From Camelus dromedarius (taxonomy: Eukaryota): a DNA stretch of 64,000 nucleotides. Where the stretch lies: assembly GCF_036321535.1 (NCBI RefSeq), contig NC_087461.1, positions 19,468,001 through 19,532,000 on the forward strand, read 5' to 3'. Both the position numbers and the translations under genes were made by a program. Below, one piece after another: positions 2,944 to 49,760 of the stretch (the stretch's first letter is position 1; every line of letters begins with the position of its first letter). The notes beneath the pieces were generated by a model, which made no database searches, was not told the origin of the DNA, and worked only from the letters and a program-made list of their open reading frames with translations.

Positions 2944-3054
2944 GTGGAGCTGGTATTCCCCAACAATGACCCTGCAGCATCCATGGTGGCTTTCTATGGC
3001 TGCCTGCTGGCTGAAGACGTTCCCTTGCCCATCGAAGTGCCCCTCACGCAAAAG
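2944..3054 (+). pseudogene. DIP2C: DIP2C exon 10 (111 nt)
   Basis: cactcaag|GTG...AAG|gtaaag; VELVFPNNDPAASMVAFYGCLLAEDVPLPIEVPLTQK vs recalled human VALVFPNNDPAAFMAAFYGCLLAEVVPVPIEVPLTRK. Confidence 0.93.
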
Positions 3055-6000
3055 GTAAAGAACTGGATGTCCGCTCGGCTGTGCCGGAACGTTCTGTTGT
3101 GGGGTCAGACACCTAGGGTGTCTCACTGGTTCTCAGCAGAGGGGCAGCACTGACACCATGGCGTAGCTCAGCTGCCAGGCGAGCAGAGGTGGACCTGCCT
3201 TGCCGGAGCTAAGTGATCCGCTAGTGAGCACGGGTTCCAGGATCCCGTTCCTCCATGTCACTCCACTGAAACCTGGGTAAACGAGGGATTTTCACTTACT
3301 TTTATTTCAGGGGTCATGGTTGTTGCATTTGTTCAGGTGCTCAGACATTGTCAAGTCCCAGGCTCACCTATGATTTGTCAGATCTTACTCTGTAACTAGA
3401 ATAAATCACTAATCTTGCTGTTACAGAGTAGGCCAGTGTCAGGAATGAACTTTGTGCACATCCTGCACAACAGTGTGTGTGTCTTTGTCCTTGTGAATAG
3501 CACGTCTCCCACTGCCACTTTCCTGTAGAAAATGATTGTGGAATGGCTGCTGTATCCGTTTCTTGGGTACAAAATCTGCACATTCCCTGCTTGGCCTCCT
3601 GGGCGTGTGCAAGTATCAAGGGGGCTGCGGGCGGCCCCCGAAGGGGGGAGAGTGAGCCCTGCAGCCCTGGACCCCAGAACCCCCCCAGTGCCCTGAGGAG
3701 GAAGCACTGGCATCTGCAAGGTTTGCCTCCAGCACCTCACCTGCCTGCAGTCCTGGGGGCAGGCCCAGTGTGTCTCACTGGCGTGTCCTAGGCTTCTGAG
3801 ACTTGCCTGCCAGCTGTCTCTGTCATCCCAGGCTGTGACCTCCCAGGTCCACTCACACCTTCATGGTGTCACTCTGGATCTCAGGACCAAAAAGCCCCTC
3901 TTGGAAGAAACAGTGGTTCCCTCCTGGCCCCCTCTCCCTAACGTTGTGCTGGGACAAAGCAAGAGGCACCAGATTCTCAGGGAGCCGGAAGCTGTGCATT
4001 GGGCCTCGGTCTGTGACATCAGGGATGACATTCATTCTTAGAAATCTTCATATTTTTAAATAAAAGAATCTGTGGGTGTGGTGCCGTTCAGCCTGGGCTA
4101 AGGTGTGCACGTGAGCATAGGTGATGAAGTTTATGGCTCCTCTGTCCACCTGTCCTGTGCCCAGCAGGCCTGTCTCAAAATAAAGGGCCTAAAGATAACC
4201 AAATTTTCCAAATCCTAACTGTTGCTTAATGACCCTCACCAAAGTCTCCAGCCCAATGTACGTGTATTTCTTCCCTGTTCTGATTCTTGGGGTGAAAGGA
4301 GAGGAGTTCATAGCAGGAGAAGTCAGGGTTTCTCCAACAGTTGAGCCGTGTAGTGGACAGGCCGAGAGAGGCACCTGCAGACGTCTGTGCTGTGATGGGC
4401 AGATCTGGACAGGGCCGGCCAGTCCTCTTGAGCTGGCCAAGCAGATTTCCCTCTGCCCCCACCCCACTCCGGGGAGAAGCAAGGCCATCAGGGGCTGCGG
4501 TTGTGCGTATTCTGAGTGCCGTAGGACCGGAGACACAGGGGGCCCTGAGGCCACAGTCGTCCAGCCGGGCAGGGCCTGGCCCATCAGTGCTGGCCTCTGT
4601 GTAGCTGGAGCAGCAGGACGCCTCTGCTCGGGGGAGTCTCCTGTGAGAGGCACCACCTCCAGGAGGCTCACCGTCCTGCACCGATGGAGACCGTCTTCCC
4701 TAGATTCTAGCACATGGCCCATTTGTTTGCTTTAATAAGGGTTTCACATATCCTGTTAGAGTGGAACATCTCTGGAGGGAGGAACAGTGATGTCTTGTCC
4801 CATACTTAAAACCTCATGTGAAGCAGCCCATGAGCCCTCCCCCGGGAGTGCGTTTTCCTACAGGAAATCAGAGGGAGTCAGTGGGGAGGGAAGGAAACGG
4901 GGCAGCCAGAGGGGAAGGTCCACCCAGCTGATGCGTTTGTGGGATTTGTCTTAGAATTCTCCAGTCTGCATGTGTGCCTGTGTTTAGGGTAAGAGACGAG
5001 ACCAGATGTACCAGATGTTGATCACTGTTGAAGCCAATGATGGGTACATAGGATTCTTTCTCCTTTTCTCTACCTTTGTGTGTGCTTGGAAATTTCCATT
5101 ATAAATAAAAAGTTCAAAATTAATTGGCAAAAAATACATTAATGACATATTTGTGTTGGTATTGATAAGGAAAATCCCTGGTGTCAGATTTCTTTGATCC
5201 ACTTGATTATGTGGCCGTAATAATCTTCAGACTGACTGGTCTCCAGCCTGCCCTGTGCGGACCCTGCAGGGCAGTGCGTCTGGAGTTCAGCTCTCCTTTT
5301 TGTCTCTGTGTTACTGTCTTCCCCCACCCCCTGAGGCTGCCAGCTGATAGGTCGGGGATCTGGGCGGACAGGGGTCAAAACTGAGTGAGCACCAGTTGGT
5401 AGTTGTGGGGCCACAAGCTCTTGACTGAGACTTTCCGTGAACTCACCTCACATTTATTAGGGAGAGAATCCTTTTCAGGGTAGGATTGATGCTTTCTGTC
5501 TGGGAGACTGAGATGGAGTTGGGGCAGGGGTGACAGTGGAGTGCCCCAGAAGTTACCTGCAGAGCCTGCGGGTGCAGAGAGACTGCCTGGCAAGGGACCT
5601 ACTGACGCAGCTCCTGTACTGGAGAACGATTGGAAGAGAAAGAAGGCTTTTAACTCAGGTGTGGTCCAGCTCTTTGTGAACAACAAAAGAGTCCTTCGTG
5701 AGAACTTGTGGTCCTTGATGGCTCAGCTCTTCAGAGGAAGGGCCGGCCCCCAGCCCAGGCCAGAAACAAGCCATTCCAGGGAAAGGCACCCAGGAAACAC
5801 AGGGGGAAGTGTCAGGGCCCGAGAGCTCCAGCCGGGAGGGGCAGTTCCTTTTCTTCCCAAGAGGGAGTCTATCCGACAGTGGCATGGGCTTTCGCATATC
5901 ATGGCTCAGGACCCTGTCCCCAGGTCCCTTTTGGGACTGGGGGCTCTGCTTCAGGTTCTGGGGTCAAGATGGGTTTAGTTTCAGGGACCCCAGCACAGGC

Positions 6001-7347: not shown

Positions 7348-7471
7348 GACGCAGGCAGCCAGCAGATCGGGTTCTTGCTGGGAAGCTGTGGGGTGACGGT
7401 AGCCTTGACGAGTGATGTCTGCCACAAAGGGCTGCCAAAAAATCCGACCGGGGAGATCCCACAGTTCAAAG
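7348..7471 (+). pseudogene. DIP2C: DIP2C exon 11 (124 nt)
   Basis: ctcccag|GAC...AAAG|gtgagc; DAGSQQIGFLLGSCGVTVALTSDVCHKGLPKNPTGEIPQFK. Confidence 0.95.
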
Positions 7472-7716: not shown

Positions 7717-7826
7717 GTTGGCCAAAGCTCTTATGGTTTGTCACAGAGTCAAAATTTCCCTCTAAACCTCCTCGGGATTGGTTCCCACACATTAAGGATG
7801 CAAATAATGACACTGCATATATCAAG
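7717..7826 (+). pseudogene. DIP2C: DIP2C exon 12 (110 nt)
   Basis: cccaag|GTTGG...ATCAAG|gtgaat; GWPKLLWFVTESKFPSKPPRDWFPHIKDANNDTAYIK. Confidence 0.95.
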
Positions 7827-7948: not shown

Positions 7949-8051
7949 TACAAGACATGCAAGGACGGAAGCGTGCTCGGGGTGACTGTGACCGGGATCG
8001 CATTTCTCACCCACTGCCAGGCCCTCACCCAGGCCTGTGGCTACATGGAAG
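7949..8051 (+). pseudogene. DIP2C: DIP2C exon 13 (103 nt)
   Basis: attgcag|TAC...GAAG|gtacag; YKTCKDGSVLGVTVTGIAFLTHCQALTQACGYME. Confidence 0.95.
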
Positions 8052-9744: not shown

Positions 9745-9809
9745 CTGAAATGATTGTGAATGTGTTGTATTTCAAGAAAGACGCTGGGCTCTGGCATGGA
9801 ATCCTAACA
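9745..9809 (+). pseudogene. DIP2C: DIP2C exon 14 (65 nt)
   Basis: ttgtatag|CTGAA...CTAACA|gtaagt; AEMIVNVLYFKKDAGLWHGILT. Confidence 0.93.
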
Positions 9810-11196
9810 GTAAGTGTGGCGCCTGCCCCACTGTGTCCTGTTTACCTTTGAATGTGCTCAGTGTCGGGGTTAGAGTTGTGATCTGTGTGCGGTGCGTCCT
9901 GAGGAAGCCCCTTCCTCCCCTGTTATAAAGAAAAGCCGCCATTGTTAGAAGTGTTAAGTTGTCAGCTGACACAACTCCCAGAAGCACAGCAAACCAGTGA
10001 ATCAGTAGCTCCTCGCCTGAGTCTTGGGCACGCACTCTGAGGTTTTGGCTGTAAGGGCCTTTCTCAGGCTCTGGAAGTTCAGTATCTTTCTCCCCACGGT
10101 TGCACTGAAGATGCACAGAAGTGATGTTGACGTCTCGCACGTGGGTCACTCTCCCGTACATCTGATTTGGCTGCCACATTCTTGTTTTTATTGCCTGTGA
10201 GTCATTGATAAATGAACATGTCAGTAATCTGCTGTTTCTTATGCTGCAGGGGAAAAGTATCTCACACGTTTTCCCCTTGGCCGAAACTTCAGCATGAGCT
10301 GTGTGGAATGTGTCTCACTGTCGCCAGTGTCACTTGGGCAGTGATGACCATTCAGAGCTGTAGGCATCTTTAATGGAGGGGTGACCGTATTACTTACGAC
10401 ATGCTCAGAGCTCAGGAAATGTGTGGTGTAGCTGCCGAGACGCTCACTGTGTCTGATTTATATATGATAATTTCCACTCACCCACTTTTCTTTTTAAGTT
10501 TCTTATTCTGAAATTATCTCTTCTGAAGGAAAAAAATTCTAGTTGTTTCATGTGAGTGATAGGAACATAAATACGGAAAGTGGGATTTGTTATTTCCTGA
10601 TAAACCAGAATTTGTTAGAATAAGAGCACGCAGGCATCGCACAGGCAGAAGCTGGGGCTCCGGCCCAGCCGGCTTCTTTCCCTGTGACCATCTGGACGCT
10701 GGTCAGTGAGACACAAGCACAGCCTGCACGCGCACTCCGGAGCCGGCTGGCGTCGGGGAGAGAGCGTGGCACAGCGCACCCTGGCTGGAACTCGGTCCCT
10801 CCTTCTGTAGCTTGTAGCTCCAGGCAGGTCACCTGTGCCCAAGAATCGTCTGCTGCCCAAGTTGCTCTGCACCTCAGTTTCCCTATCTGTCCAGGGGAAA
10901 TGACGACCCAGGGGCAGGAGCAGTGTTGAGAAAAGGGATGGATGGTTGGGCAGAGGCTCTGCTGTGGGTTAAACAGTGCTTCTTACTATCACTGACGCAG
11001 GAAAGTGGACCTCGTGACTAAGCCAGCAGACTGTGCGGTGCTGGGTCATAAAAAAACTTCCCCTCCTGGCGTCTCAGGTGCAACCTAAGTTCTTAAATCT
11101 TCCCATACCTGGCGTGTGTCACAGCTAGTCCAGCATTTTGCTTTCATGTGGCTTTTTACAAATAAAAACAGGTGTACTTTTAAATTATTACTCAGA

Positions 11197-11580
11197 GTAT
11201 TCGTTTGCTAGGTGCCTTTAAACAGTAGAAATTCACTACCCTGGTTCTGGAGTCTGGAAGTCTGAGGTGAAGGTGTCACAGAGTGGCTCCCTCCGGGGCT
11301 CTGAGAGAGACTGTGTTCCAGGCGCCTCTCCCGCTGCCGCTGGTGCCGCAGCCCTGGGCTTGCGGGTGCACCTCCCGGGCTCCGCCTCCCCCAGCCTGCC
11401 TTCTCCCTGCGTCTGTCTCTCTTGTCTCTTCTTAGAGGGATGCCAGTCATTGGATTTAGGGCCCCTCATCTTAACTCATCGCACCTGCAAGGGCCCCGTT
11501 TCCCAGGAAGGTCACACTTAAGGTTCACAAGGTCAGGACTGGGACACACCTTTGCGAGGGACACAAGCCAACCCATGGCA
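11197..11580 (-). mobile_element. MaLR LTR (MLT1B/C-like)
   Basis: gtattcgtttgctagg...gttctggagtctggaagtctgaggtgaaggtgtc...cagtcattggatttagggccc...ggtcacac...acccatggca. Confidence 0.75.
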
Positions 11581-13111
11581 GACACTGAGGGTTAAGGTTT
11601 CTGACTCTCACGTGGAGTCTTGATTGAGAATGGGGGTGAGGGTGTCCTGGCAGCAGAGGGTTCCTGCCTGGCTCCTCTGTCTTCCATCTCAAAGTGTCGA
11701 TTTGTTGGGGTCTTTAGAAAAGAAAAAGCCAAAGAGGGGATCAGTATCGATTCCAGTGTTTGGGGCACATTTCCAGGTATTTTCACGTGGGTCTTACTAT
11801 TTCAGAAGACTTCTTTTATATCCCGTCAGCGCTGTTCTTTTCTATTGTGACAGACAGAAAAGCTCTATTTTCAGACTTTCTTACGCTTCTTTATTTGTTT
11901 TTTAATTGAGATGTAATTGACATTGGACACACACTTCTTTCTAAAATGCACCAGTTACTTAATTCAAAGGAGATCTTTTTGCAAATTTTAACTTTTATGT
12001 TTGCCCATTTATGTTTTTAGTTTCATTATAAACCTTGTTGATATTTTAAGGCCAAGTAGGAAACTTCTATTTTAAGTCCATGTTTTAGATCCTAAAACTA
12101 CATTACGCACTTGTATGTGGAAAATTACAGAAAGAAATGTGATGTTTACCTGAATTGCACTCTCTAACTTTGCTCACACTGAAGAAACCTTAGTTTGCAG
12201 GGGTAAAGTCCATGTTCTTGGAAATGTGTTATTATTCACTGACTGTCAGAAGACGTTTATTGTGATATAATACACCAGGGGTGGGGTCCAGCAGTGACCA
12301 AAAGGAAACCCTGCCGCCCACAGGGAGCTCAGACCCTGATGGAGGCGGCCTGCATGGATGGTTAGATGATGCTTGCTGTGGAGACAGCAGTGGGCGGAGC
12401 TATTTTGGTGGAGGGATGAGCAGTGAAATATTGGGGCCACCTTGGAGGATAGTGAGGGAGAAAGCCACGTGGCCACCTGCCAGAAGAAGGTTCTGTGGAG
12501 GCAAGAGTAAGGGGCTTGAAGGGAGAGCAAGGCTGGATGCCACGTGGCCTTGGGAGGAACAGGGTGGAGGCGAGGCCGGGACAGCAGAGAAGGCAGAGCA
12601 TGGGAGTGGCAGGACTGTGCTTTCCCCAACACCTCACAACTCGTCTCATCAGACAATTCCCAATTCTCACAGGAACAACAGAGCACGTGCCTACACAATG
12701 CGCATCGGGCCTGGAGGCTGGATGCACTGAGCTGCCGTTTCTCCTCACTGCTGCCCTCTTTCTTGGGGATGGGATTCCCCTTCTTAGCACTTCTCAAACT
12801 TGGAAAATCCGACCTTGCAGAGAGAGGGAGTGGGGAATGGAGAATGGGCCGTCTGTGGTGGAGGCAGCGTGGTGAGGGAGCACTGCAGGGTCTTCATGCT
12901 TGAGGCACTTGGAGGTAGATGAGTCGATGTTAGTGTCCCCTAAACAGAGAGTGGGTGCTAAGAATGGTACGAGGACATGTGGCAGTCATGCTGGCTTTCA
13001 GAGGCCTTCAGGACCAAGGGTGCAGCCCCGGTCTGCGTGAAGCATGTTTACACACATGTCTGTGCTCTGACAGCTGGGGTGCTTCTAATCAGACACAAAC
13101 TGCTGTTACGG

Positions 13112-13251
13112 GCCCACAGACGACAGCAACCAGCTCCCGGGCCGAGGCGTTCTCTCCATGAATGGCCTGACCTACGGGGTCATCCGAGGGGACTCGGAAG
13201 AGAAGCTGCCTGTACTCACTGTGCAGGACGTCGGCCTCGTGATGCCTGGAG
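13112..13251 (+). pseudogene. DIP2C: DIP2C exon 18 (140 nt), acceptor mutated to GG
   Basis: tgttacgg|GCCCACA...CCTGGAG|gtgagt; PTDDSNQLPGRGVLSMNGLTYGVIRGDSEEKLPVLTVQDVGLVMPG; 13110-13111 read GG where AG is required. Confidence 0.92.
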
Positions 13252-14099: not shown

Positions 14100-14180
14100 A
14101 GACTTATGGATATACACACAGTGTAGACATGCACACATACAGGCATGCACATACACGTACAGACATGCACACACTCACAT
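14100..14180. repeat. Degenerate (CA)n-like low-complexity tract
   Basis: atatacacacagtgtagacatgcacacatacaggcatgcacatacacgtacagacatgcacacactcaca. Confidence 0.6.
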
Positions 14181-16462: not shown

Positions 16463-16491
16463 ACCCCCCGGCACTCAGCCGCCTGCCCCAG

Positions 16492-18368: not shown

Positions 18369-20760
18369 GTATGTCCAAATGTTGTGCAGGCCCGGGTCAC
18401 TGCCAGCAAGGCCTCAGCCTCCCCCTCCGGCCACCATTCACATGCTCCTGGGGAACTCAGCTCCCTCCCATGCAGCCCCTTTCTCCCCAGGGTGCGGTGG
18501 GATGTAGCATCTCTTCTGGGTGCAGCTGGGGCTCAGACCTCGATCTCCTGGGTGGCCCTTGGAACAGACACTCTCAGGGTCACAGCTCCCTTGTGCCCAG
18601 ATGAGCATGAGGCTTCCTTCCATGTTTTGTGAGTCAAGCAGTTGACACGTGGAAGCCTGTGAGGAGTTGCGCTGCTCTGCCACTTGGGGAGCATGGGCAC
18701 CACTTCCGAGTCATCCTCCACACAGCTCATCGTCCTGCACTTCGGGCTGCACACGGCTGTCAGTGGAGAATTTATTGCAAGAACATGGGTGGTGGGGGAG
18801 CAGCCCCTCTGCCAGCACAGTAACGGGGTCCCGGCCTCCAACTTGACATGCCGACCTCAGGCAGGCAGGGTGCCCTCAGGCCAGGGTGCTAGGATGACAG
18901 ACAATGCATACATGGCACAGATTTTACAAGGAAATGAGTAAGCTATGCCACAGGGAGGTCAGGAGCTGACCCAAGGCTGTGGGACCAGGCAGGAGAGACA
19001 GGCCCAGACCTGACGGCTCTCTGCTCCCCCGATAGGATGGCAGTGGGGCCCGGTATAGGGACAAGTCAGCTAGAGGTGGTCAGGGGCACGGGGCCCAGCG
19101 CAGTTGGTGGTGGCTGTAGGAACCAGCCCACCCCCGGGCCCACCCCCGGGCAGGGAGCTTGGCTGAGATGGGGTGGGCGGCCTCTCCAGGTTTGGGTGAG
19201 GAGGAGCGTGGGCACCGGGGCTCTGACTCCAGGCCGCTCGCTGCTGTGCCCTCTGAGCACAGCATCCGTGGGGTGGTTGTGATCCTCTCCTGGCACAAGA
19301 CCTAGAAAGTCACAGCATGCCTGCTTTCCTGGCACCTTGGGTTTGTGTTTACAGTGACAAACACTGCTCTTCCTCTTAAATTATTCTCTTGTATTCTGAC
19401 TCCTTAACTTCTCCACTTCTTTCCTCTCACCTCTGTTGCACCCTCTCAGTCCTGGCTTGTGTGACTGTCGTGTAGAACAGAGTCACGTCTGACCGAACCA
19501 TCCATTTCTTTATTCTACGGGCAATTGCTTCAAGTGACAAAGCCACTGAAAGACACAGCTTGCCCTTCATGAGCCTAGGAAGTGGATGAAAAATAGGCTC
19601 TCTTGTCTCCTCTGGCCTCTGGGTGTGAACAGCACTGGGACTGACACAGGGGGGCTCTCGGCATGGATTTGATCAAGCCAGGGATGAAACACAAGCTGGC
19701 CGCGTGATTTTTCTGATTTTTATACTGCAACTCTTTTGGTGAAGCTCTCCCAGCCTCCTGTCCTGCTCCCCCCCCATCACTGACCCACACTCACACACTG
19801 GCCTGGTACTCTGCAGCATCTGACCTCCTCCTGAGGTCTTGGTTTCTATGCACGTGTGTAGTGAAAATGTGTGAATGATAATATAAGAAAGGTATCTACG
19901 GTTTCTTGCAGTCAGAAATTTTGAAAAAGTTTCTATAGTTCTTTAAGAAACTTCTTTCATTAAAAAAGAAAAGAAAAGCTGTCAGGATGGATTGTATCCG
20001 CTTTTCCCTTTTGAAATGCTTCATACACTGTGGAGTGAGCGTTGGTGATCAAGTCAGTAACAGAGACTAGGAGGGGTGTGGTCCGTGTAGGAGCGGGTTG
20101 GTTTGCTATTGCCCAGAGACCCCGAAGCCTTCACAGTGATGAGTGAGTGACTATGTCCTCCCCCTTCTGCCATGTTACTCCTTGAATTCATTCAAAGAGG
20201 CACTTACTAAACATGTACAATATTTTGTTGCTGTTGATGGTCAGCTCTCGCTGACATGATAACAACAGGGAACAAGATGCACGTCTTTACCTACTTTGAA
20301 ATATGTCACATGCTAAATTTCATACTTGTCTTCTGCATTATTTTCATCGTCACTGAAGTGAGTAGGTCTTAGCAGCCCCCCAACTGGAAACCAAAGGCAG
20401 CAGACTCTGTAGAGCCCGGGAAGTTTGGTAGAAGTGTGGCTCTGTGGACCCTTGTCAGGGCTTGTTCCCATTTGCCATCATTGTCATCCCAGTGACTGAC
20501 TTGAAGCCCTGTTCTCGTGAGACTTTTCAAAGCTGGGTCTTCGAGAAGATTCTCCAGAGTGAGCTCTGTACCGAAGTGGGAGGTCGTGTTTTCAGGAACT
20601 TCATCACATTTTCCTCACATGTGTGCTGCTGCTTCTTTCCAGAAATCAGCCCTGCCTCTGTTGTTGCGGAAAAATGTGTTACAGCTCGGTTGTGACAGTT
20701 GTGACAGCAACCTGGATCCGGGCGAGAGACCAAGCAGCACTGGAGAGTTGGAGAACTAGG

Positions 20761-20766
20761 TTTATT
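20761..20766 (-). terminator. LTR polyadenylation signal AATAAA
   Basis: + strand tttatt, about 70 nt downstream of the TATA box in LTR orientation (R region). Confidence 0.7.
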
Positions 20767-20832
20767 ATGCCAACGGGCCCAGAGGAGTTAACACTTCAAG
20801 CTCTGGACCCCGTCTGTAGGTTTACACAGGCC

Positions 20833-20839
20833 TTTTATA
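20833..20839 (-). promoter_or_regulatory. LTR TATA box (TATAAAA)
   Basis: + strand ttttata; lies downstream of the CCAAT repeats and upstream of the AATAAA in LTR orientation. Confidence 0.7.
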
Positions 20840-20869
20840 GGCTGCCAGTTTTATACTTTGCAACATCAT

Positions 20870-21034
20870 ATGCAAATAAAGTACAACAGAAGTTGACCAA
20901 CCAGGAATAAGCTTTGTAGAAACAGAGCAATCAGGAGTGAGCTCCATGCAAATGAAGTGCTACAAATGAACCAATCAGAAGTGAGAGTAGTAACCAATCA
21001 GGAGTGAAGGAAATAACCCATCAGAAGTGAGCTC
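20870..21034. promoter_or_regulatory. LTR U3 enhancer: two perfect octamers and four CCAAT-like repeat units
   Basis: ATGCAAAT at 20870-20877 and 20946-20953; units resembling aaccaatcag(a/g)agtgag at about 20927, 20969, 20992 and 21015 (exact CCAAT at 20971 and 20994). Confidence 0.6.
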
Positions 21035-22544
21035 AGGGAACTAATAGAATTCTAGGTGTAAGTTAGCCTCTTTAGAGGCAAAAAGTGAGATAGAGCCTCT
21101 GGGCCAGGGAACTGGACGATGCTAAGAGGAGAGCAGCGACCCTGCCTAGGGGTCCTGCTGGTCTTTTTATGGGGCTTCCCACCTCACTGTGATGGTGGGG
21201 AACCTGATGTCTGGGAAGCAGATTGCACAGGCCAGTGGCAGAGACCTGGGCCAGACAGAAGACAACAACCAGGCCTGGAAGGTGAGCACAGAGAGCCAGA
21301 CCTCACCAGTTCCTCTCCACCTGGTACCCAAGGGCCGGACCACAGACATCATCGACTTCCACTCCCTCTCTGCCAGCCCAGTCAGTGTCCCTGTCTTCCA
21401 CCTGCCCTCCTGGTCCCGCAAGCGACACCATGTGGCTTTATAAGGAAAGCGTGTTTATTGGGAGATGCAGTGTTGGGGGACACTTGACAGTAGCACAGTC
21501 CCAGGACTGGCAGGCTTGGGGCCAGTGTGAGTCCCTTCCTGTCCTTGTATCCCCTGAGCACTTGTTCCTGGTTCTCCCACAGCCCTGATGTGACACCCAG
21601 GCTGCCTCACAGCCACATTATTGTGAAGCTACAGTCCTTTCTTTGATTGTCGGAATTCAAGAAAACATCAGTTCAGAACCCAGGTTTGGGAGGCAGACAT
21701 TCTTAAAGCAGCCTTGGGATATGTGGGAGAAACTCCACATAAACATGAAAATTGGTCCCATGTGGTTGTGAGTCCCCATGATGAACATTCAGCCCCAGAA
21801 CTCCTCCTGCTCTCCCAAAGGTAGCCCTGCTGTGTGGGGGCTCCCAGGGAATGTGACAAAGAAGTCACTTAAGATACTGCCAATTTGGTAACACATGATA
21901 ACGTGTTCAGTGAAAGCACTGGATCACCATGTTCCCCAGCTCGTGGTGCATTTCTCTCAGTGGTGGATTAAGGTGAACATGTGGGTATTTGCTATATCCT
22001 GACCCTAGTGCTGTGTCCTGGCATGAAATAGGGCCATCCTTGTCACCAGACTGTCAGCCTGGTGCCTACATTCTGTGTGCTTTGCAGTGCTGTTGAACGA
22101 CTTCAGGGATGACCATTGAAAAACAAATTTAAGAGATTCCATTCTTAAAACAGGATAGATCTGATTCTGTCACTGCAGCCCCCAGACATCACTGTTGCAT
22201 CTTCTGGAAGCCCAGGGGAAGGGGTTTTCTGTGTCAGTTAACCTGTCTGTGAGGGGAATGAATGGAGTCTTCCCATCCATGAGGAGATTTCAGAACTCTT
22301 CCCTAATGGAGGCAGGGCACCAACCCTCTGACCCGTGAGTCTAAATCAGGCACGGTGAATTCCAGGTTGCTGCCAGGAAAGCATTGTAAGCACCTGCTGG
22401 TTCTGTCGATTATATTCATCAGGGACGATCCCCTCACTGTCTGGAGGCCCCCTGAAAGCACTCAGGCAGACCACACCAGTTTAAGTGTTGCAATCAGCCC
22501 GGCCCTCGGGACAGTCTGGACCTAACGGCTATGCTCTGTTCCAG

Positions 22545-22624
22545 CTCCTGTTCCTCTCGGAGGTCCTGCAGTGGAGGGCACAGACCACCCTGACCACGTG
22601 CTGTACACGCTGCTCAACGGCAGG
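22545..22624 (+). pseudogene. DIP2C: DIP2C exon 24 with a 1-bp deletion (80 nt; 81 expected)
   Basis: gttccag|CTC...GGCAGG|gtgagg; LLFLSEVLQWRAQTT, then ACCACCCTGACCAC lacks one C of ACC ACC CCT GAC CAC; DHVLYTLLNGR continues in the shifted frame. Confidence 0.92.
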
Positions 22625-29715: not shown

Positions 29716-29839
29716 GGAACGATAGCAAACTCGCTGACTTGTGTCCAGATGCACAAATGGGCTGAGAAGATAGCCATGATGCTGATGCAGAGGGGGCACC
29801 TGCAGGACGGGGACCACGTTGCTCTGGTCTACCAGTCCC
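29716..29839 (+). pseudogene. DIP2C: DIP2C exon 25 (124 nt)
   Basis: tactcag|GGAACG...CAGTCCC|gtaaga; GTIANSLTCVQMHKWAEKIAMMLMQRGHLQDGDHVALVYQS. Confidence 0.93.
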
Positions 29840-30326: not shown

Positions 30327-30448
30327 GAATAGACCTCATCGCAGCGTTTTATGGCTGCCTGTACGCAGGGTGTGTGCCAATAACTGTCCGTCCTCCACAC
30401 CCGCAGAACATCGCAACCACGCTGCCTACGGTGAAGATGATCGTGGAG
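30327..30448 (+). pseudogene. DIP2C: DIP2C exon 26 (122 nt)
   Basis: gtgtag|GAATA...GTGGAG|gtaacg; IDLIAAFYGCLYAGCVPITVRPPHPQNIATTLPTVKMIVE. Confidence 0.95.
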
Positions 30449-31267: not shown

Positions 31268-31379
31268 GTGAGCCGCTCTGCCTGTTTGATGACAACACAA
31301 CTGATCTGTAAATTGTTGCAGTCCAGGGAGGCAGCTGCAGCCACAGATGTCAGGGCATGGCCCCATATACTGGACACAG
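31268..31379 (+). pseudogene. DIP2C: DIP2C exon 27 (112 nt), donor disrupted
   Basis: ccctcag|GTGAGC...GACACAG|tttggt; VSRSACLMTTQLICKLLQSREAAAATDVRAWPHILDT; TT instead of GT at 31380-31381. Confidence 0.92.
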
Positions 31380-31467
31380 TTTGGTCCTCAAACTAGCCCA
31401 TTTGTTTGTTTGCTTAAATGATTTTCTGTTAAGTCAGAAATGCTAACAGCTTTGTTTTACTCTCCAG

Positions 31468-31577
31468 ATGATTTGCCAAAGAAGTGGCCCACCCAGATCT
31501 ACAAACCTTCCAACCCAGACATGCTAGCCTATCTTGATTTTAGTGTGTCCACAACTGGGATGCTAGCTGGAGTGAAG
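31468..31577 (+). pseudogene. DIP2C: DIP2C exon 28 (110 nt)
   Basis: tctccag|ATGAT...GTGAAG|gtgaga; DDLPKKWPTQIYKPSNPDMLAYLDFSVSTTGMLAGVK. Confidence 0.95.
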
Positions 31578-35019: not shown

Positions 35020-35150
35020 ATGTCACACGCAGCCACCTGTGCCTTCTGCCATTCCATTAAGCTGCAGTGTGAGCTCTACCCCTCTAGGGAAGTGGCCATC
35101 TGCTTGGACCCTTACTGTGGACTCGGGCTTGTGCTCTGCTGCCTCTGCAG
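35020..35150 (+). pseudogene. DIP2C: DIP2C exon 29 (131 nt), donor GT mutated to AT
   Basis: cttgcag|ATGTCA...TGCAG|atgagt; MSHAATCAFCHSIKLQCELYPSREVAICLDPYCGLGLVLCCLC. Confidence 0.94.
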
Positions 35151-35399
35151 ATGAGTTTCCTCTTGCGGGTCTTTACAGTGATAAACACACCACACACCCT
35201 TTTCCATACCACTTGTGGAGGAATGCTAGTGTCTGGGGAGGGCCACCGCCTGCAGGAGGGGCTGCTTGCAACGGGGCCTCCCCTCAGCCCTGCTCCCAGG
35301 GTGCCAGGGAATGCTGGCTGTGGTCTCCACGTTCTCTGTGGAGCTGCTGAAGCCAGCAGAGATGCAGTCTGCACCCATTCCCAGAAGCTGTCTGTGGGG

Positions 35400-36195
35400 A
35401 ATCCATCAGGAGATATTTCATCAAAAATACAAATAGCCAATAATTACTTGAAAAGATGCTTAACGCTTACTAGGAAAGGCAGATTAAAACCAGTGAGATA
35501 CCACTTCACGCCCACTGAAGGCTGTAACCAAAAAGACGAAAAATAATGAAGTCAGAGGACTCAAATTCCACGCTTTCAAGACTACACTGTAAAGCATGGT
35601 ACCCAGGGGTGTGCAGAAACTGCAATTCTCACACATTGTCATGGGAATATAAAATAGTGAAACCACAGTTTAGCATGTCCTTAAAAATTAAACAAATCTA
35701 CCACATGGCCAAAAAGTTCCTCTCCTGGGTATCTACCAAAGAGAAGGGAAAACGTATGTCCGTAAAGGCTAGAGGCTTGAAATTTTAATAACAGCCTTCA
35801 TTTAAAAAAAAAAAAAAAAAAAAAGGAAACAATCCAAATATCCACCAGCTGGTGAAGGGGTTTGTCATACCCACACAGTGGGATTCAGCTACAGCATGGA
35901 TGGACTTCAGAAGCACTGTGCCACTTGAAGCACGTATATGATTGAATCGCATGGTGCCGTTGAGGGAAATGTTCAGAAAAGGCAGATCCGTAGAGATGGA
36001 GAGCAGGCCGGCTGACTGGCCAGAGCTGAACGCGGGGCTGACTGCAGGGAATCGAGGCGCACCTTAGGGGGATGGAGTGTTTCACAGCTGCATTGCAGTG
36101 GCTGTGGGGACCAAGTTCTTTCAGTTCTCTACTGAAAATAGGCAGGTTTATGTTACGCAGATTACATCTAAGTAAAAGAACTTTTAAAAAGAAAA
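35400..36195 (+). mobile_element. Old L1 (L1MC/ME-like) 3' region
   Basis: aaaaccagtgagataccacttcac, acattgtcatgggaatataaaatagtg, ccaaatatccaccagctggtgaa, ttcagctacagcatggatggac; interrupted by an A run near 35805-35824. Confidence 0.75.
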
Positions 36196-36474
36196 CACCT
36201 TTCCTTGGAGTAGCTGGAGTGCCTGGTGCCAACACGAGCCTGCCAGTTCAGGGGGCCGACCCACGTGACCCTCAGGGTGACGTGCCATCATGAGTCGTAC
36301 GACTGCCTTGCTCAGGGTGCCCAAGCTGTGGTAGTACCTGTTTTTGTATGTTTTATCAGGCTAACACTCTGAAATCACTGAATTGTTACAAATATGCAAA
36401 TTTATGTTAGTTATCAAAATGTCTTTTTTTCTCTGTCTCCTGGTCAACCGTGTTTTATTTCTCTTTTTCCATCT

Positions 36475-36910
36475 AGACTTTATTCCTCAGAACAGTGCAG
36501 AGAGCCCAGAAATAGACCCATGTGTGAATAGTCAACTGGTCTTTATAGAAGCTCAAAGGCAGTACAGTGGAACAAAGATGATCTTGTCAACACGCGTTGC
36601 TGGAACAACTGAACATCCACATGCAAAAAAATGAATCTAGACACAGATGTTACAGCCTTCACAAATGTCAACTCAGAATGGACCATAGACCTGAATGTGA
36701 AGCATGAAGCTATGCAGCTCCTGGAAGGTCACCTAGGAGAGGTCTCAGCGAGCTTGGGCTCAGCAGTGCCCTTTTAGACACTACACCAAAGGCATGGCCC
36801 ACGGAAGAAGGAGCTGGCAGGCCGGACGTCGCTAAAATGACACATTTCTGCGCAAGACCCTGTTGAGAGAACAGAAAGGCAGGCCACAGCCTGGAGAAAG
36901 CGTTTCCAAA
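36475..36910 (+). mobile_element. L1 ORF2 fragment
   Basis: cagagagcccagaaatagaccca, catccacatgcaaaaaaatgaatctagac, aactcagaatggaccatagacctgaatgtgaag. Confidence 0.85.
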
Positions 36911-39900
36911 GCGCTCTTTAAATTATTTTACTGCTTTTGAAGTTAAGAGCTAAATTAGGATAGCTCAGGTTCCAGAAAGTCACAGGAGATACTCTTCACT
37001 GTGTACAGCCTGCGGTTAAGTGGGGGGATGTTCATTGCCAAGAGATCAATATTGGTTAATATAGGAAACAACTAGTCAACTTCTGTTGGATTAAGCCAAA
37101 AACGGGCAAGTAGAAAACTGATGAATCAGATTTTCTGTTTGTCCTCAATTATCAGGATTTAATGATTTTTTTAATGTTGACTTCCATCCTCCTTAGGAGC
37201 ATGAGGAAGGAGGTGAAACTGTGTCTGATTTTCACTGGTGTGCTTCTGTTCTCCAGCCGTGAGCTCCACGCTGTGGACCCTGCCCTTTCATGTGCTAACG
37301 GTCTGATCAAGGACGTCATTTATCCTGATGTATATTCTTGAGAAAGCTGGTAGTCGGTGATTTGTATTTCACTTTCTTTGTTTTGCACATCCTTATGATA
37401 GTATTTACAAAGTAAAATGCTGGGAATAATATGGAAGTGATAGGTAGTCATAATGAAGAAGACTCTTAGCACTGTTGATTCCCTAAGATACGGGGCTCCA
37501 ATGTCATTAACTGGATTTGGTCCCAGCCTGAAACTGTAAAAGTCCTGGATGACAGAGTAGCTCTGTAAATTGGCACTGCAACAAAAGTCATGCAGGGAAA
37601 TGCAATTCAGGTGTTATTGTTAACCCTGATTCGTGAACGGGTTGAGTAACACTTGGTGCTAACAGAAAACCGTGCCCCAACACTTCCCAGCGGTAAAAGG
37701 CATGTTTCCTGGTGGATAATTATGATTTATATGTCGTGTGATGCTCAGGTTTGTTAGATCTTGGGCTGTTACCTGGTGTTACGATCCCATTTTTGACTCA
37801 GAATGTTCTTTTAATAACCATTCCGCAGAGGTAAATTTTCCATTATTTTTATTTCTTCTTGCTTAATGCTGCCTTTAGGCTTCTGATTGCAGTTTGCTCT
37901 AACTCAGGGTCATGCAGATGTGGTGTGCAGACTGATTCCTGAGGACCGTGCTGCCAAGGGCAGAGGGCCGGGCTGCCCCTGTGGAGCAAAGCAGAGCACA
38001 GCCTCCGAGGAGCCGTCCTCATGGGGACACCACTGCTTGTGCCAGTGTTCTTGAGGCAGGGGTCTTAGTGACTGAAGGGAGAGTGCTGGGTCCCTCTTAG
38101 CTCTCATGGCCCCTGGAAAAAGATGTGTCCCGACATGGCCCGCAGGACCTCTGCATGAGGGGCAGCCCTGGGTGCACTGTCGGGGCTGAGGGATGTCGGT
38201 TTGTCTTCAGGGCCCGAGATACGTTCTTGGAAAGTTGAGAGCAGCGTGGTGGTGTTCAGCTGGCTTTCTCAATTAGATGGCAACTCTGATTTTAAAGCCC
38301 CTCGGTGTGGAACACAAGGACTTGCGGATGAAAGTTTGTTTTCACAAGCTGCGAGGGCTAGGCTGAACGTGTATGCAAGTGTGTTTGATAGCGTGTTACT
38401 TGCAGTAAGCAGTTGTTTGACCAGAGTGTCAGTATTTTGAAACGTAGATGTATTTGTTGTAATATTATTTGCTCTCTTAAATAAGTGATCTTTAAAGGCC
38501 TAAATTAATTTCCCAAGGACAAATCTTAGAGAAAAGTTGACAGATTTTTGAGAGTTATAATTATTGGAGTAGGATCTTACTGATTTTTATGTATTGACTG
38601 TACAAATAATTTTTATGCCTTTCCATGGGGCTCCATTGGAATGTGCAGTTTTGTATATTATGTGCCTAACCAAACTTTCACATCAGCAGGATTTCTCAGG
38701 AAATGTGGAAGTCTGGGGCGTGATAGTCCCTTCTCCTGCTTACTGAGCAGTCAGTGCGTCCTCAGAGCTCTTTGAAGTGCATCTGAACTCCATTTAGACC
38801 CAGTTCTTACTCTCTTCTAGAGTTTCACTTCGTTCTTTAAATACAGGCGTCCCTGTTTTCAGATTATCAAATTTTATTACTCAGAAGGATTAAGTAAAAT
38901 CCAAAAAAATCCCCACATCCCCACTGACAGAGTTTCCACCTGATTATCCAGCATCCTTCCTAGAATAACACTTACGTTTTATCCCCACACACTGGTGGTT
39001 GGTCGTCTGATGTTTTGATATATTAAACTCCAGTAGAAGAATCTAAAGCAAATGTATGATTGAGGTTTTCCAGGACAGAAGTATGTGTGAGTGTGTGTGT
39101 GATATTCTGTGGAAGCAAGTGTCATGAGAACTGGCAGGTGGGGGGAGGGATGCCTGTGTCCTGTGCCTGCCCCACCCCTGTTAGCCTCCTTGTGTGTTTG
39201 CTCCTGTGCACTCCCTGCTTCACAGCTGTGGTCGTAGTTTGTGTGTGATTCCACATCCTGCCTTATCCTTTTAATATTAGAAATGGGAAGCTTTTAAACA
39301 TGCTTCTTGGATTTAAGTTTTGTGGAACCCGTCTTTAGAATCCAAGTTAGAACATGTCTGCCAGTAAATCCCTTTCATTAACTGAAAGGACTGCATTGTT
39401 CATAGTGCTCCAGACGGGGAGTGTAGCACCCCTGGAAAGCCAGTGTTTCCATTTGTGAACCAGAAAGGTCCTTGTGAGGTGGGGTTGGCGGGAGAGGTTT
39501 GTCGGGGTCATACCTGTTGAGGTGAAAAGGAGCAGAGGATTGGACAGGGTGCGACCAGGAGCCAGCCCCACGCAGAGCTTCTGAGCGAGGGAGTGAGGGC
39601 CACGGGTTGGGTGGGTGGGGGCCTGCTGGCCAGGCCTCAAGCCCCCACCTCACATCACAGGCTCATTCCTTCCTGAAGGGACATTTGTATGAAGGGAAAA
39701 CATGGTATTTATTCTAATGTATCCAAAGAGCATGTCAGTTACTTGTACATACAGATGTAGTCTAAGAACCTGCTTTTTGAAGTTCTTGCTTGTGATCTTC
39801 ACTTGCTCAGCTGGGATCCCCAGGGTGGTGGCAGGAACGTGGGCAGAACCTTAGAAAGCCTTCAGCTTGCAGGTGTCTGTTTGCTCTGAGCCCATTACTC

Positions 39901-40299
39901 GCTCCTCCCTTGAAGAAGCACTCTCCTTTAAGAGGAGACAGCGGTGTAAATGGGCTTCTGTTGCTCTGCCGTACCCATGGCATGTGAGTGTGCTGAGATG
40001 CCTCAACAGACTCGGTGAGCCCGTGCAGTGGATGCTCAGCAGCACAGAGTTGTTGAAGTGACGTGGCAATATCTTCTTTGACTTACTCTGACGTCCCTTC
40101 AGAAGAGAGCAGAATAATGAGCATTCCCGGTGTGTACAGCCTACACAACTTCAAGTAATGACTCAAAGGGAAGACCAGTGCGGCATGACAGCACCAGCTC
40201 TAATGGTGGACTGCCCGCTGTGGGTGGCTTTTACACCTCTGAATCTTTGTTTTCAACAGATGCCTTAAGATTCCTCAGTGATACAATGAAAGCCAATTG

Positions 40300-40960
40300 T
40301 ATTTTTAAATGGGCAAAGGACTTGATCAGAGATCCCTCCGGAGAAAACATACAGGTGGCCAATAAGCACATGTCAGGGTGCTCAGCATCATGGGTCATTC
40401 AGGGGAGTGCAAGTCAGACCCACAGTGAGGAGCCATGTCACCCCAGCTGGGACGGTGATACTCAGGAAACAGAAACTGGCAGGTTGGGGAGAATGTGGAG
40501 AGACTGTGATCTTTGTACATTGCTGGCAGGAATGTAAAATGGTGCAGTTCCTCAAAAAATTAAATGTGGAATTACCATATGATCTTTTGGGCATATANNN
40601 NNNNNNNNNNNNNNNNNNNNNNNNNNNNNNNNNNNNNNNNNNNNNNNNNNNNNNNNNNNNNNNNNNNNNNNNNNNNNNNNNNNNNNNNNNNNNNNNNNNN
40701 NNNNNNNNNNNNNNNNNNNNNNNNNNNNNNNNNNNNNNNNNNNNGCGTCATTCAGCCTTGGAGAGGAAGGACATTCTGACACAGGCTACAATGTGGAAGA
40801 ATCTTGAAGGCAATGCTAAGTGAAATGATCCAGTCAGAAGAGGACAGAGATTGTACTTCCCCTAAATATCTGGAATAGGCAAATTCAGAAACAAAGTAGA
40901 TGGGAGGTCACCAGAGATGGGTGTGGTGATGGTTAGGGATAAGTTTGTAAACACTTTTTG
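40300..40960 (+). mobile_element. L1 (L1MB-like) ORF2 end and 3' UTR; contains an N run
   Basis: aaatgggcaaaggacttg, gtggccaataagcacatg, ttgctggcaggaatgtaaaatggtgcag, ggcaatgctaagtgaaat. Confidence 0.85.
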
Positions 40961-41289
40961 AAAGAGAGACCTTAGCAGAAAAGCATGATTATTAAGAAAT
41001 TAAAAAAAAAAAAACAAAACAGAAAGACCAATTGGTTATTCAAATTACTGTTTCTCTTTCTCTTTCTGAACTTGCCCCTTATAAATTCCAGGTTTATCTG
41101 CTTTAAAAAAAATGTTCTTACACTGTGAACATCTGTCAACTTTCCTTAGATTATTTTTTTAGCAGCTTATGTAACTTGAACTGAAATGAGCATTTTTGTT
41201 CTCTCCTAAAACTGCCCATTTAGTGTCTTTATAACACTGTTTTTGGCTTTAATAGATTTCAGTAAATTGTAAAGATGTACAGAAGATTT

Positions 41290-41390
41290 AAAAATATATA
41301 CATATATTTTTAATGACGGTGCTGGGGATTGAACCCAGGACCTCGGGCACCCCAAGTAAGCACTCTACCCCTGAGCTCTACCCTCCTCCC
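41290..41390 (-). mobile_element. tRNA-derived SINE, camelid Vic-1-like
   Basis: Reverse complement GGGAGGAGGGTAGAGCTCAGGGGTAGAGTG...GAGGTCCTGGGTTCAATCCCCAGCACC with A/B boxes and an AT-rich tail; 9-bp TSD agaagattt (41281-41289 and 41391-41399). Confidence 0.85.
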
Positions 41391-41599
41391 AGAAGATTTT
41401 TGTTGACATTTTTGCTGGCTTGTTTACCTCCACAACATTTTTAAATGATGCATGCTTTGACTTGGCTGCAATAAACTTTGTGTTGTAAAGACAGAAACTG
41501 AAAGCCTTTCCTGGAGGTAGTTTTCTTTCTGCCTTGTTAGTTGCTTTGTTTTGAGTTTTGTTTTTGGACTTTGGTTTGAACAGTCCAACAGCAGTAGCA

Positions 41600-42500
41600 A
41601 TTAAAGCAGATTAATATGTGGTCCATACTTAAGCTTGTGCATCTCAAGATGTAGCTTAGTTGGCTACAAGTTGAAACCAGCAGAGTGGTCTGGGAGTGCT
41701 TCAGCCCTCCCAGGTCCCAGGGTGGTGGTCCCGGTGTAGGGGATGCAGGAAGGTGGTGTGGGGGGACAGGATGGTGTGGAGGCTGGGAGGGAGAGCGTCC
41801 TGACCGTAGCAGGACCCTGGTTTCGGCAAGGTTTGCTGGCCGGTGCTCCTTTGGAAAGACTCCTCCCACACTTTAATGGAAGATATTGCTCACAGGGCTC
41901 CCTGTTCCTGTAGATGTTGCTTTGGTGACAGTGCTGTGCGTTCATGTTGGTCTGGTGGGGAAGGCTGACAGCCAAGGTGCAATCTGGGAAGATGCAGCAC
42001 ATGTCCCAGGTTCTTCTTCACATGGACAAAATCCAGCTGGTACTCTGAATCCATGAGGAGGTCTTTCTGTGATCTCATCACGAAACTACTCTTCAACAGC
42101 AATCTTATAAGCAGAGATAGAAACTGGGACAATTTCAGGCTGCTGTCTGGGAACAAACTCAGATCAGCTGCAAGCTGCTGAGGTCTTTAACAGGAAGGTG
42201 TGTGCGTCAATCCCTGCTTAGGAAACAGCATGTGAAAAGCCCAGGTAAGGCAAAGACTGGTTGTCTGCCTTGGGCCAACAGGCTCATAGGAGGGGTTCAG
42301 GAGGTACTGCTGAGACAGTAAGTGAAAATTTCAAGGCTCGTACAGAGGGCTGTAACATGTCCATTTATACACAACACTCTTGGTGACTTTTTGTTTCTGC
42401 TAGAACTGCAATGGGACTGTAAATAGAACTCTTCACCAGGGGAAGGAGACCAGAGACATGTACAAGGAAAAGAGGAAATAAAAGGGGACTATAGCAGAGA
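41600..42500. other. Approximate inversion or rearrangement junction between + strand DIP2C intron 29 and - strand DIP2C intron 2
   Basis: The junction must lie between 35151 and 47954, the nearest opposite-strand exons. By eye, intronic T/G-rich skew on + switches to A/C-rich skew around 41.6-42.5 kb. The position is approximate. Confidence 0.45.
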
Positions 42501-48122: not shown

Positions 48123-49688
48123 CTGTAACAAGTTGAAAAAAAACTAATTAATTCAAACTTTAGTCTTTTTTAAATTTGTTACAGCGCCAAGCAGAGCCGC
48201 CGACCCCATGCAGAACAGCACACAGAACACCAAAGGGACCATGCCACACAGGGCCACCGTCAGCACCCAGCCGACGTGGATCAACTGCGTCCTCAGCCCT
48301 GCAGTGGCTCCAGGCCCATCTTCCGGAAGCACACAGAGCTGCTTCTGTTTCACCTTTGTTTGCTAAGGCCCAGAAATTAAAATCCAGCAACATGAGCGCC
48401 TACTGTCTCCCTGCCAGCCTTCCTCTGAGACCAGGGGGGCCACCTGCAGATGGGAATGCACGACGATGGGCTGTGCAGACGGCCGTCCCCACAGCAGTCC
48501 TGCTCGAGGTCGAGAAGGGAGGCGGGAGAACATCTCTGAACGTCCGCCTGCGTGTGCTCTGAAGCCTCCCACACAGGGTCAGCCGGCCAACACACTGACT
48601 TTTCGTTCACTCAGACAGCGTGGCTTCTTCCTCTTATAAACCAGAGAGCAGGAAACTCAGGCTGTCAGCAGGCAGCCCGCACAACGGGCCCATCTCCATG
48701 TTAACTTTCTCAAGTACAAAGGAGAGAAAGAAATCACACGAAGTCAAACAAAGCTACACAACAGCAGAAACTCAATATCCAAGTTCAGTGCCCTGGAACG
48801 TGAGCACCTGCGAGGACGCGCCATCTGTGCTGGTACAGCACTGGAGGGGCACAGCCTGGAGGGCACGGCCTGCACTGTGCAGGCGTGTGCAGACCTAAAC
48901 CTCACCCAGCAGAGCCTCGCAATGGGGCTTTAACTGTGCCCCAAAGTGATCACTGCAGAGTCCCTTTCTGCCACTGTCCTCCCTCCTCCTGGAGGGCCTG
49001 TGTTAGCTCTGAGCCTTTCTTAACCCAGAAAATTCTCAAGGTCGCCCTCAGACTGCACTAAGCTTCCCCCAGAACACAGGTGTGACAGCTGCAGCCCGTA
49101 TCCTCTTCCTTCCCCTAAAATGTACAGAACCCAGTTGAGTGCAGAGAGTCTACAAACCTGCACATGTGAAAACACTGGAATTTAACAGAATGTGTACTTG
49201 GGAAGAAATCATAACGTGGACAATCACATTTCAAAACACAACCAACCTTTACGATTTCATAATCCCAGGCAGGATGTTACACTGTTTTCTAGAACTGCCC
49301 CCACCAATGACATCAACAAAAACCTTGGACTGATTAAGCCATTATCAATCATTTTAGCTCACTAAGCCAAAAGTCATGTTTAAATCATAAATGCTCATAT
49401 TTTTTATGATTATAGCATTTCAAAGTAATCAAACATATTACTGCCCCCTACAGATGTAACATCTATTAAATTTATTAGGCACATTTATAGAAAACCTCTA
49501 TGTTTCTTCTCCATTCACAGAACACCCTGCAATCACAGGAGGGAGCTGGATGTGGCTCGTGCCACCTCAACATCATGATCTGCATGCAGACCAGGGACCG
49601 CGGAAGTACCTGTGCTCAGCTGTTCTCTTGCGTGTGGCAGTTAACTTTCAAAGCTGACGCTTCATGCTGCTCATCAAGGTTTACGTAC

Positions 49689-49760
49689 TTGGAGGCTGGG
49701 GCAGATAGGCACCAATCAACTTCGATCTCTTCTTTTCATATACTTTTTGTGTGATGTCAC
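49689..49760 (-). pseudogene. DIP2C: DIP2C exon 2 (72 nt; DMAP1-binding domain), opposite orientation to exons 10-29
   Basis: Minus strand: cctttccttctcttacag|GTGACATCACACAAAAAGTATATGAAAAG...CCTCCAA|gtacgt; GDITQKVYEKKRSKLIGAYLPQPP vs recalled human GDITQKGYEKKRSKLIGAYLPQPP. Both splice sites are intact. Confidence 0.93.

Follow-up and report, generated by a model that had tools for sequence, protein, structure and literature searches.

A decayed, intron-containing partial copy of DIP2C, very probably a dead duplicate, in the genome of Camelus dromedarius

The window analysed here, a stretch of 64,000 nucleotides of the Camelus dromedarius genome, carries a series of 17 DIP2-type exons on the plus strand (2944-35150), which was delineated by tblastn with a full-length DIP2 protein (P0049, a fish DIP2A of 1603 aa) and is colinear with residues 432-603 and 713-1241 of this query. 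The series begins with a decayed DIP2C exon at 2944..3054 (aa 432-469), whose ag/gt splice sites are intact, as are those of the three decayed exons that follow it (7348-7471, 7717-7826 and 7949-8051; aa 470-581); a further decayed exon at 9745..9809 (aa 582-603) is the last before a missing block. Beyond this block lie a decayed exon at 13112..13251 (aa 713-759) and four others with intact splice sites (15269-15405, 16492-16700, 17645-17759 and 18167-18368; aa 760-980), the latter four differing by 24 residue changes from the locus in another mammal (L001). They are followed by an exon split by a long terminal repeat (LTR) at 20643..21281 (parts 20643-20661 and 21187-21281; aa 981-1017), an exon with a 1-bp loss at 22545..22624 (aa 1018-1044) and five more: 29716..29839 (decayed, aa 1045-1083), 30327..30448 (decayed, with the AMP-binding core, aa 1084-1125), 31268..31381 (ending in ACAG followed by tt, aa 1126-1161), 31468..31577 (decayed, aa 1162-1198) and the final plus-strand exon at 35020..35152 (aa 1199-1241), in which 4 of 43 residues are changed. 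On the minus strand, at 49760-49689, lies exon 2 of DIP2C, which encodes part of the DMAP1-binding domain (aa 42-63 of P0049) and retains intact ag/gt sites.

Members of the DIP2 family consist of a DMAP1-binding domain and two fatty acyl-AMP ligase (FAAL)-like domains (PMC9342972). The exons in the window resemble this arrangement in that they match, in colinear order, the DMAP1-binding domain, the first FAAL-like domain and the start of the second one; in Pfam, the plus-strand exons match AMP-binding and the Mug62-like domain of DIP2 weakly. The window holds only part of DIP2, with the end of the second adenylation domain lying outside it, and it differs from the family in having neither the N-terminal linker exons nor the last ~360 residues. 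Unlike a working family member, the copy has no open reading frame and its core motifs are mutated; in the exon at 29716..29839, for example, the conserved VYPPG is changed to VYQSR, and the base at donor position -1 is altered as well. A homologue search with P0049 returned fish DIP2A proteins, at least 120 of them. In the phylogenetic tree, the window sequence falls outside two clades, that of fish DIP2A (support 100/100) and a DIP2B-like one (100/72), and the rows closest to it by path are named fish DIP2C, although the branching among the DIP2C rows collapses into a polytomy. The identities of intact mammalian exons, 82-88% to DIP2C as against 78% to DIP2A, agree with this, and the assignment to DIP2C rather than to DIP2A or DIP2B is tentative. 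No structure of a DIP2 protein was found in the PDB, and a search of the literature for duplicates or pseudogenes of DIP2C, and for work on this gene in camels, returned nothing relevant. The protein collection likewise contained no near-identical open reading frame of the window copy or of a paralogue; since the best exon identity there was 88%, with unrelated intron flanks, the contigs of this species are absent from that collection.

The sequence-only reading of this locus had listed a three-exon deletion, an LTR within an exon, a 1-bp deletion, three dead splice sites and an inverted exon, all of which are present. In five other genomic loci, aa 604-634, 635-674 and 675-713 are each encoded by an exon of their own, and none of these three exons was found between 9809 and 13112 of the window; the exon-less interval expected to carry them (9810..13109, plus strand, aa 604-713) is, from 12271 rightwards, colinear with the intron that precedes the next exon in L003, a locus of another mammal. 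A weak minus-strand similarity between 12200-12304 and aa 666-694, with an E-value of about 1-2, was dismissed as a chance match; it overlaps this L003-colinear intron sequence. The plus-strand acceptor at 13110-13111 is GG instead of the AG present in L003; the donor at 31380-31381 reads tt, which is equivalent to the loss of one G at the junction; and the donor at 35151-35152 reads at, while open reading frames of more than 10 other animals show AG followed by gt. The 1-bp loss affects the C-run at 22588-22590, for which independent sequencing runs contain both the deleted form and a form with one more C; the extra C is present in the second genomic copy, described below, and in mRNA. The same reading had estimated that about 1 in 10 residues is changed, and comparison with the exons of another mammal gave a very similar figure of ~10.6% (34/322).

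The exon for aa 981-1017 is interrupted at 20662..21186 by an element of 525 bp (minus strand) with TG...CA ends, flanked by a 4-bp target duplication, CTGT, at 20658-20661 and 21187-21190. Read depth over the element reached 18,000-48,000, about 1000 times the ~20 seen in its flanks, which indicates that the LTR belongs to a very high-copy repeat family, and the repeat boundaries in other genomic copies of the LTR coincide with 20662 and 21186. The terminal dinucleotides, the short target duplication, the many copies and the lack of internal genes together identify a solo LTR. Judging from the order of its CCAAT-type repeats, TATA-like box and AATAAA, the LTR is probably oriented antisense to the exon. 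It is absent from L001, a colinear locus of another mammal.

We compared the window with DNA reads of the runs X1, X10 and X11, which come from three studies and two organisms (A and B), and with the RNA run X15, over ~5 kb. The contigs of each DNA run fell into two forms, one of which matched the window with 0-2 differences, whereas the other differed from it at 18/307, 38/401 and 16/399 positions (4-9.5%). The second form has an extra C behind 22587, with which the reading frame stays open; one of its contigs runs across position 21189 and continues for 164 non-LTR letters, so the second form appears to be free of the LTR. The depth of the second form was one third of that of the window form in X1 and approximately 1:1 in X10 and X11. 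In X15, depth was 150 and 121 in exon bins, compared with 10-35 in introns, where the signal may derive from DNA in the library. At 17675, 17699, 17710, 22587 and 22619, this RNA run contained essentially the second form only (158/158, 150.5/156, 156/156), and its letters restore the consensus, namely RPD, the reading frame and LLNCR. Since the second form is in frame and enriched in RNA over the exons, a working DIP2C exists and the gene has not been lost.

These results also bear on whether the lesions are real. It could be argued that they are draft errors in a working gene and that the inversion is a misjoin at an N run; the window does contain five N runs, and its base at 17765 differs from all four runs compared. 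However, both the 1-bp deletion and the junction of exon and LTR are found in raw data of independent studies. The window form, 1-bp deletion included, is recovered with 0-2 differences in contigs of independent runs, and the LTR-exon junction recurs in a contig from an RNA library. Moreover, the locus of the other mammal shows the LTR to be a true insertion, and all five N runs lie inside L1 ORF2-derived sequence with colinear flanks, with no DIP2 exon expected beneath them. Assembly or consensus error is hence a highly improbable source of the lesions, and this concern, raised in the sequence-only reading, can be set aside. One N run, at 40598-40744, was considered as the inversion junction and rejected: it sits within a single L1 (minus strand), and its flanks are colinear with the 3' part of a second L1 in the window (185 nt vs 198 nt), which indicates that this run is not a scaffold join.

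The other proposal of the sequence-only reading, that the orthologue itself was lost and the window copy is the only, decaying DIP2C of this lineage, is refuted. Many independent lesions and ~10% residue change would agree with such a loss; against it, a frame-keeping form with consensus residues occurs in three DNA runs and dominates the RNA over exons at a depth of ~150, leaving this scenario a negligible probability. The window copy shares its kinds of lesions with unitary pseudogenes, but these leave no intact copy, whereas an expressed, in-frame second form is present in these genomes. Nor is it credible that the two forms are highly divergent alleles of one locus. The near-1:1 depth ratio in X10 and X11 is what alleles would give; yet three individuals, two organisms and a ~1%-diverged relative all show the same pair of forms with the same difference counts of 18 and 38, the divergence of 4-9.5% far exceeds allelic variation, and one of the forms is a dead gene.

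We therefore conclude that the plus-strand series is very probably a dead, unprocessed partial duplicate of DIP2C which drifts neutrally, while a working DIP2C survives and is spliced and expressed. From 12271 to 22975 the window can be aligned colinearly with the locus of another mammal, in the introns as well as in the exons, and introns are present throughout the copy, which distinguishes it from a processed pseudogene (no introns, a poly(A) tail). Retained introns, disabling lesions, the absence of constraint and a functional second copy, seen intact and expressed over 3-4 exons within the ~5 kb compared, are the marks of an unprocessed pseudogene. In the tree, all residue change lies on the branch of the window (0.11 vs 0). 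Non-synonymous divergence from the consensus amounts to 4.9%, compared with ~3.3% per lineage in introns, and thereby reaches roughly one half, or more, of the ~6.5% by which the introns of the two copies differ; this value fits a lack of constraint since the duplication. With assumed mutation rates, the intron divergence would place the duplication at ~15-30 My ago. The data support the earlier suggestion of a duplicate that escaped selection long ago, with a second copy that is 4-9.5% different in introns in all three DNA runs. Nothing in the data compared spoke for the sex-limited or heterochromatic setting that had also been suggested. The window copy is an ordinary decayed duplicate, and the idea that this lineage has lost a neuronal gene under strong constraint proves to be a false lead. 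Annotation pipelines and gene-loss screens should be aware that such a dead copy could pass for the orthologue.

The position of the copy relative to the working gene depends on the minus-strand exon 2. Its translation (23 aa) is 73% identical to aa 42-63 of P0049 in tblastn and matches PF06464 with an E-value of 4.4e-5; the score of 24.7 bits stays under the 27-bit cut-off because only a fragment of the domain is present. At one codon the exon encodes Val, whereas 114/114 DIP2 proteins have an invariant Gly there. Three words were sampled from this exon, and all of them occur in at least 10 RNA runs, which stem from 4 or more studies, although the Val codon may fall outside these three words; some of the positive RNA runs are small, covering only 0.12-0.15 of the 5-kb stretch, approximately the share of the LTR. 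The junction between plus- and minus-sense DIP2C intron sequence necessarily lies in the zone 35153..42420, and the cumulative (G+T)-(C+A) skew turns at ~42420. In L007, the locus of another mammal containing the last plus-strand exon, we found almost no intron similarity to the window, and the next exon was absent within 2.5 kb. Three further loci, L004-L006, turned out to be of marine eukaryotes and contributed nothing to the comparison.

An intragenic inversion had been proposed earlier, and the inverted orientation of exon 2 stands. A simple inversion does not, because the inverted segment exists twice, and the arrangement is better read as an inverted duplication. Our favoured explanation, to which we give somewhat better than even credence, is that the partial duplicate lies inverted inside intron 2 of the working DIP2C, as is suggested by the exact words of exon 2 in at least 10 RNA runs. 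According to this model, a block comprising at least the exons for aa 432-1241 would have been inserted in inverted orientation into intron 2 of the working gene; exon 2 on the minus strand would be part of the live gene, together with its introns further right in the window, and the gene's pre-mRNA would carry the dead exons as antisense passengers. Both splice sites of exon 2 are kept, in agreement with this model, while the Val at the invariant Gly is a better fit to a decaying copy. The latter would be expected without constraint if the window held a separate, rearranged pseudogene locus, derived from a large duplicate with promoter, exons 1-2 and exons up to at least aa 1241. Such a locus would have arisen by duplication elsewhere and would then have undergone decay and an inversion with one end in intron 2 and the other in the intron that follows aa 1241; its 5' end would still be transcribed and spliced, or its exon 2 words would be shared with the live exon. 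The variation of the two-form depth ratio between individuals would also be easier to explain by an independently varying copy number. We nevertheless consider a separate locus rather unlikely, as it calls for a duplication of far greater extent, for an additional event, and for a pseudogene exon 2 in mature RNA of at least 10 runs and 4 studies, while the other exons are not RNA-enriched. A location in intron 2, if real, would make the copy a clear natural case of an inverted duplication within a gene that has tolerated it for a long time. Possibly, though we regard this as doubtful, the antisense copy in intron 2 places an inverted repeat of tens of kb (~91-97% complementary), made up of the gene's own exons and introns, in every primary transcript, which might form very long double-stranded RNA; if so, such RNA could affect how a dosage-sensitive neuronal gene is edited, spliced or expressed in this lineage.

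A comparable arrangement is known from human PMS2CL, which lies beside PMS2 and is an unprocessed pseudogene that arose by a partial inverted segmental duplication near its parent. Like PMS2CL, the window copy is partial and intron-containing, comprises an internal-to-3' block of exons, is inverted relative to parental sequence and is riddled with frameshifts, splice defects and insertions, its parent remaining functional. It differs in that it may reside within intron 2 of its own parent, and it is much more diverged, by ~6.5% in introns.

Six-frame translation of the window, together with alignment to it of the full-length fish DIP2A retrieved with one of its exons (P0049, 1603 aa, to which residue numbers refer), revealed 17 colinear exons on the + strand (2944 to 35150), corresponding to residues 432-603 and 713-1241, and a further exon on the - strand (49760-49689) matching residues 42-63 and the DMAP1-binding domain. 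These exons belong to the DIP2 family, whose architecture comprises a DMAP1-binding domain and two fatty acyl-AMP ligase-like domains (PMC9342972). Judging from the tree, the paralogue is most likely DIP2C: the window falls outside the DIP2A clade (100/100) and outside the DIP2B-like clade, and its nearest rows are named fish DIP2C, the DIP2C rows themselves being without resolution. No window exon contains an internal stop.

Every lesion named in the sequence-only reading, i.e., the loss of exons, an exonic LTR, a 1-bp deletion, three defective splice sites and an inversion, was found in the window. Residues 604-634, 635-674 and 675-713 form three separate exons in five other genomic loci, where they lie between the '...GLWHG(I/V)LT' and 'RP...VLSM' exons; in the window, the exons for aa 604-713 had no match anywhere from 9809 to 13112, and the right-hand portion of this interval aligns colinearly with an intron of another mammal (locus L003, with intact DIP2 exons). 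The C-run at 22588-22590 holds three C where four are needed for frame, which results in a frameshift. The acceptor at 13110-13111 (+) reads GG (AG in L003), and the donors after the exon ends 31379 and 35150 (both +) read tt and at, respectively, the latter at a border that is AG|gt in more than 10 ORFs of other animals; the remaining splice sites of the decayed exons are canonical. Exon 2 is oriented opposite to all other window exons. Moreover, the strand asymmetry (G+T over C+A) climbs until about 42.4 kb and declines beyond, and therefore a junction of opposite-sense sequence lies within 35.2-42.4 kb, its position being blurred by L1 insertions.

The exon encoding residues 981-1017 is interrupted by a solo LTR of 525 bp (20662-21186), which has TG...CA termini and is flanked on either side by CTGT; L001, a colinear locus from another mammal, skips it exactly and is thus without the element. 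Its read depth reaches 18,000-48,000 vs about 20 alongside, and 20662 and 21186 are the points where contigs from other copies depart from the window sequence; the LTR is a member of a very abundant family. It is also abundant in RNA runs. Its probable orientation is antisense relative to the exons, as indicated by the order of its repeats, a TATA-like box and AATAAA. Three 23-bp CCAAT-type repeats lie at 20969-21037.

The stretch 17600-22650 is present in many DNA runs of organism A (ten studies), in one run of organism B and in RNA runs. Contigs of the DNA runs X1, X10 and X11 (three studies) and of the RNA run X15 were aligned to it at 80% likeness. Wherever contigs were listed, each of the three DNA runs held two forms: the first is that of the window (0-2 differences), while the second differs from it at 18/307 (18663-18969), 38/401 (20123-20525) and 16/399 positions (21189-21587) and is free of the frameshift because of an extra C behind 22587. 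One second-form contig extends to 21189, followed by 164 letters outside the LTR sequence. In X15, depth was 150 and 121 in the exon bins (17645-17759 and 22545-22624, respectively) and 10-35 in introns, and the ends of the high-depth contig lie no more than 3 nt from exon borders. At the coding differences, this run carries the second-form letters almost exclusively (158/158 at 17675, 17699 and 17710; 150.5/156 at 22587; 156/156 at 22619); these letters restore the frame and yield the consensus residues Pro (of RPD) and Cys (of LLNCR). Given two forms in DNA and exons of the second form in RNA, these genomes also possess a DIP2C that is in frame, spliced and expressed, and the window is a dead duplicate of that working gene. 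Hence, of the two origins proposed earlier, the segmental duplicate is borne out by the second, in-frame form in three DNA runs and in RNA, and loss of the orthologue, the surprising reading, is excluded; the locus is a real but ordinary unprocessed pseudogene.

Raw reads free of the lesions had been named as the sign of assembly errors; independent runs instead show the window form with its 1-bp deletion, which refutes that explanation. In X1 the second form had a depth of about 5.8 vs 15-18 for the window form (about 1:3), and in X10 and X11 the ratio was about 1:1; the imbalance in X1 may reflect varying copy number, sex linkage or an effect of the library. Position 17765 is T in the window and C at full depth in all four runs; this is either a variant private to the window or a minor error of the assembly.

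Since two copies exist, a simple inversion is insufficient, and the event must have been a duplication, either inverted from the start or inverted later. At least 10 RNA runs, drawn from at least 4 studies, contain exact words of exon 2 (3/3 sampled); some of these are small runs with just 0.12-0.15 of the 5-kb stretch, roughly the fraction that the LTR itself makes up. Together with the retention of both splice sites, these matches suggest that mature mRNA includes the window's exon 2. In that case, the sequence on the right of the window would be that of the working gene, whose intron 2 would house the dead exons as an inverted partial duplicate, an arrangement that we favour by a modest degree, its RNA support being the three sampled words. 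Against it stands the exon 2 codon 49741-49743 (-), which encodes Val where 114/114 DIP2 proteins have Gly (GDITQK-G-YEKKR). Alternatively, though this is less likely, the window may hold a rearranged copy at a separate locus whose 5' end is transcribed.

Compared with the intact exons of L001 and L003, which are other-mammal host contigs in ENA metagenomes, the window has 34/322 residues and 106/966 bases changed (dN 0.051, dS 0.385), in line with the one in ten residues estimated previously. Branch lengths in the tree are 0.11 for the window and 0 for the other mammal; in exon 18167-18368, all mammal-like ORFs in the collection share one consensus, and the window carries 8 private changes. 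The two forms differ at 72/1107 intron-dominated positions (6.5%), which, at assumed rates of 1.1-2.2e-9 per site per year, would give the duplicate an age of roughly 15-30 My. Non-synonymous divergence of the window from the consensus (4.9%) is no lower than the per-lineage intron divergence (about 3.3%), which argues that the dead copy was probably at no time under constraint. The window form and the exon-LTR junction also occur in an RNA-library run, in contigs that diverge from the window by about 1-3%; a related species thus appears to share both the copy and the LTR, assuming that these contigs represent that species' own DNA/RNA.

All five N runs lie within L1 ORF2-derived sequence (23135-24888 and 40598-40744). 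Four belong to one 5'-truncated L1 (~23.1-25.1 kb, +), in which a piece between two of them matches the reverse-transcriptase family (RVT_1), and the pieces follow what we take to be the usual L1 order, with spacings that agree with the N-run lengths. These four conceal no DIP2 exon, because the exons on either side of the intron encode adjoining residues (aa 1044 and 1045). The fifth (40598-40744, -) lies in an L1 3' part, and its flanks align in the same order with another L1 3' part, 32458-32999 (spacing 185 nt vs 198 nt). The run therefore represents sequence masked or left unread inside one element; unrelated contigs are not joined there. All five have lengths that suit the absent L1 sequence and look like masked stretches in continuous L1 elements, not assembly gaps.

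An A-rich unit of ~125 bp forms two tandem copies at 25200-25449 (region 25186-25452) and recurs at 387-523 (-) and 58695-58832 with 79-92% identity; it is a dispersed short repeat that may represent a SINE or the tail of an L1. At 59407-59503, a 24-bp unit is repeated in tandem about 4 times (93% matches). Finally, in three marine metagenome contigs (L004-L006), compact marine-eukaryote DIP2 genes adjoin a gene of FtsH-type AAA/peptidase M41, which has no bearing on the window's DIP2C copy.
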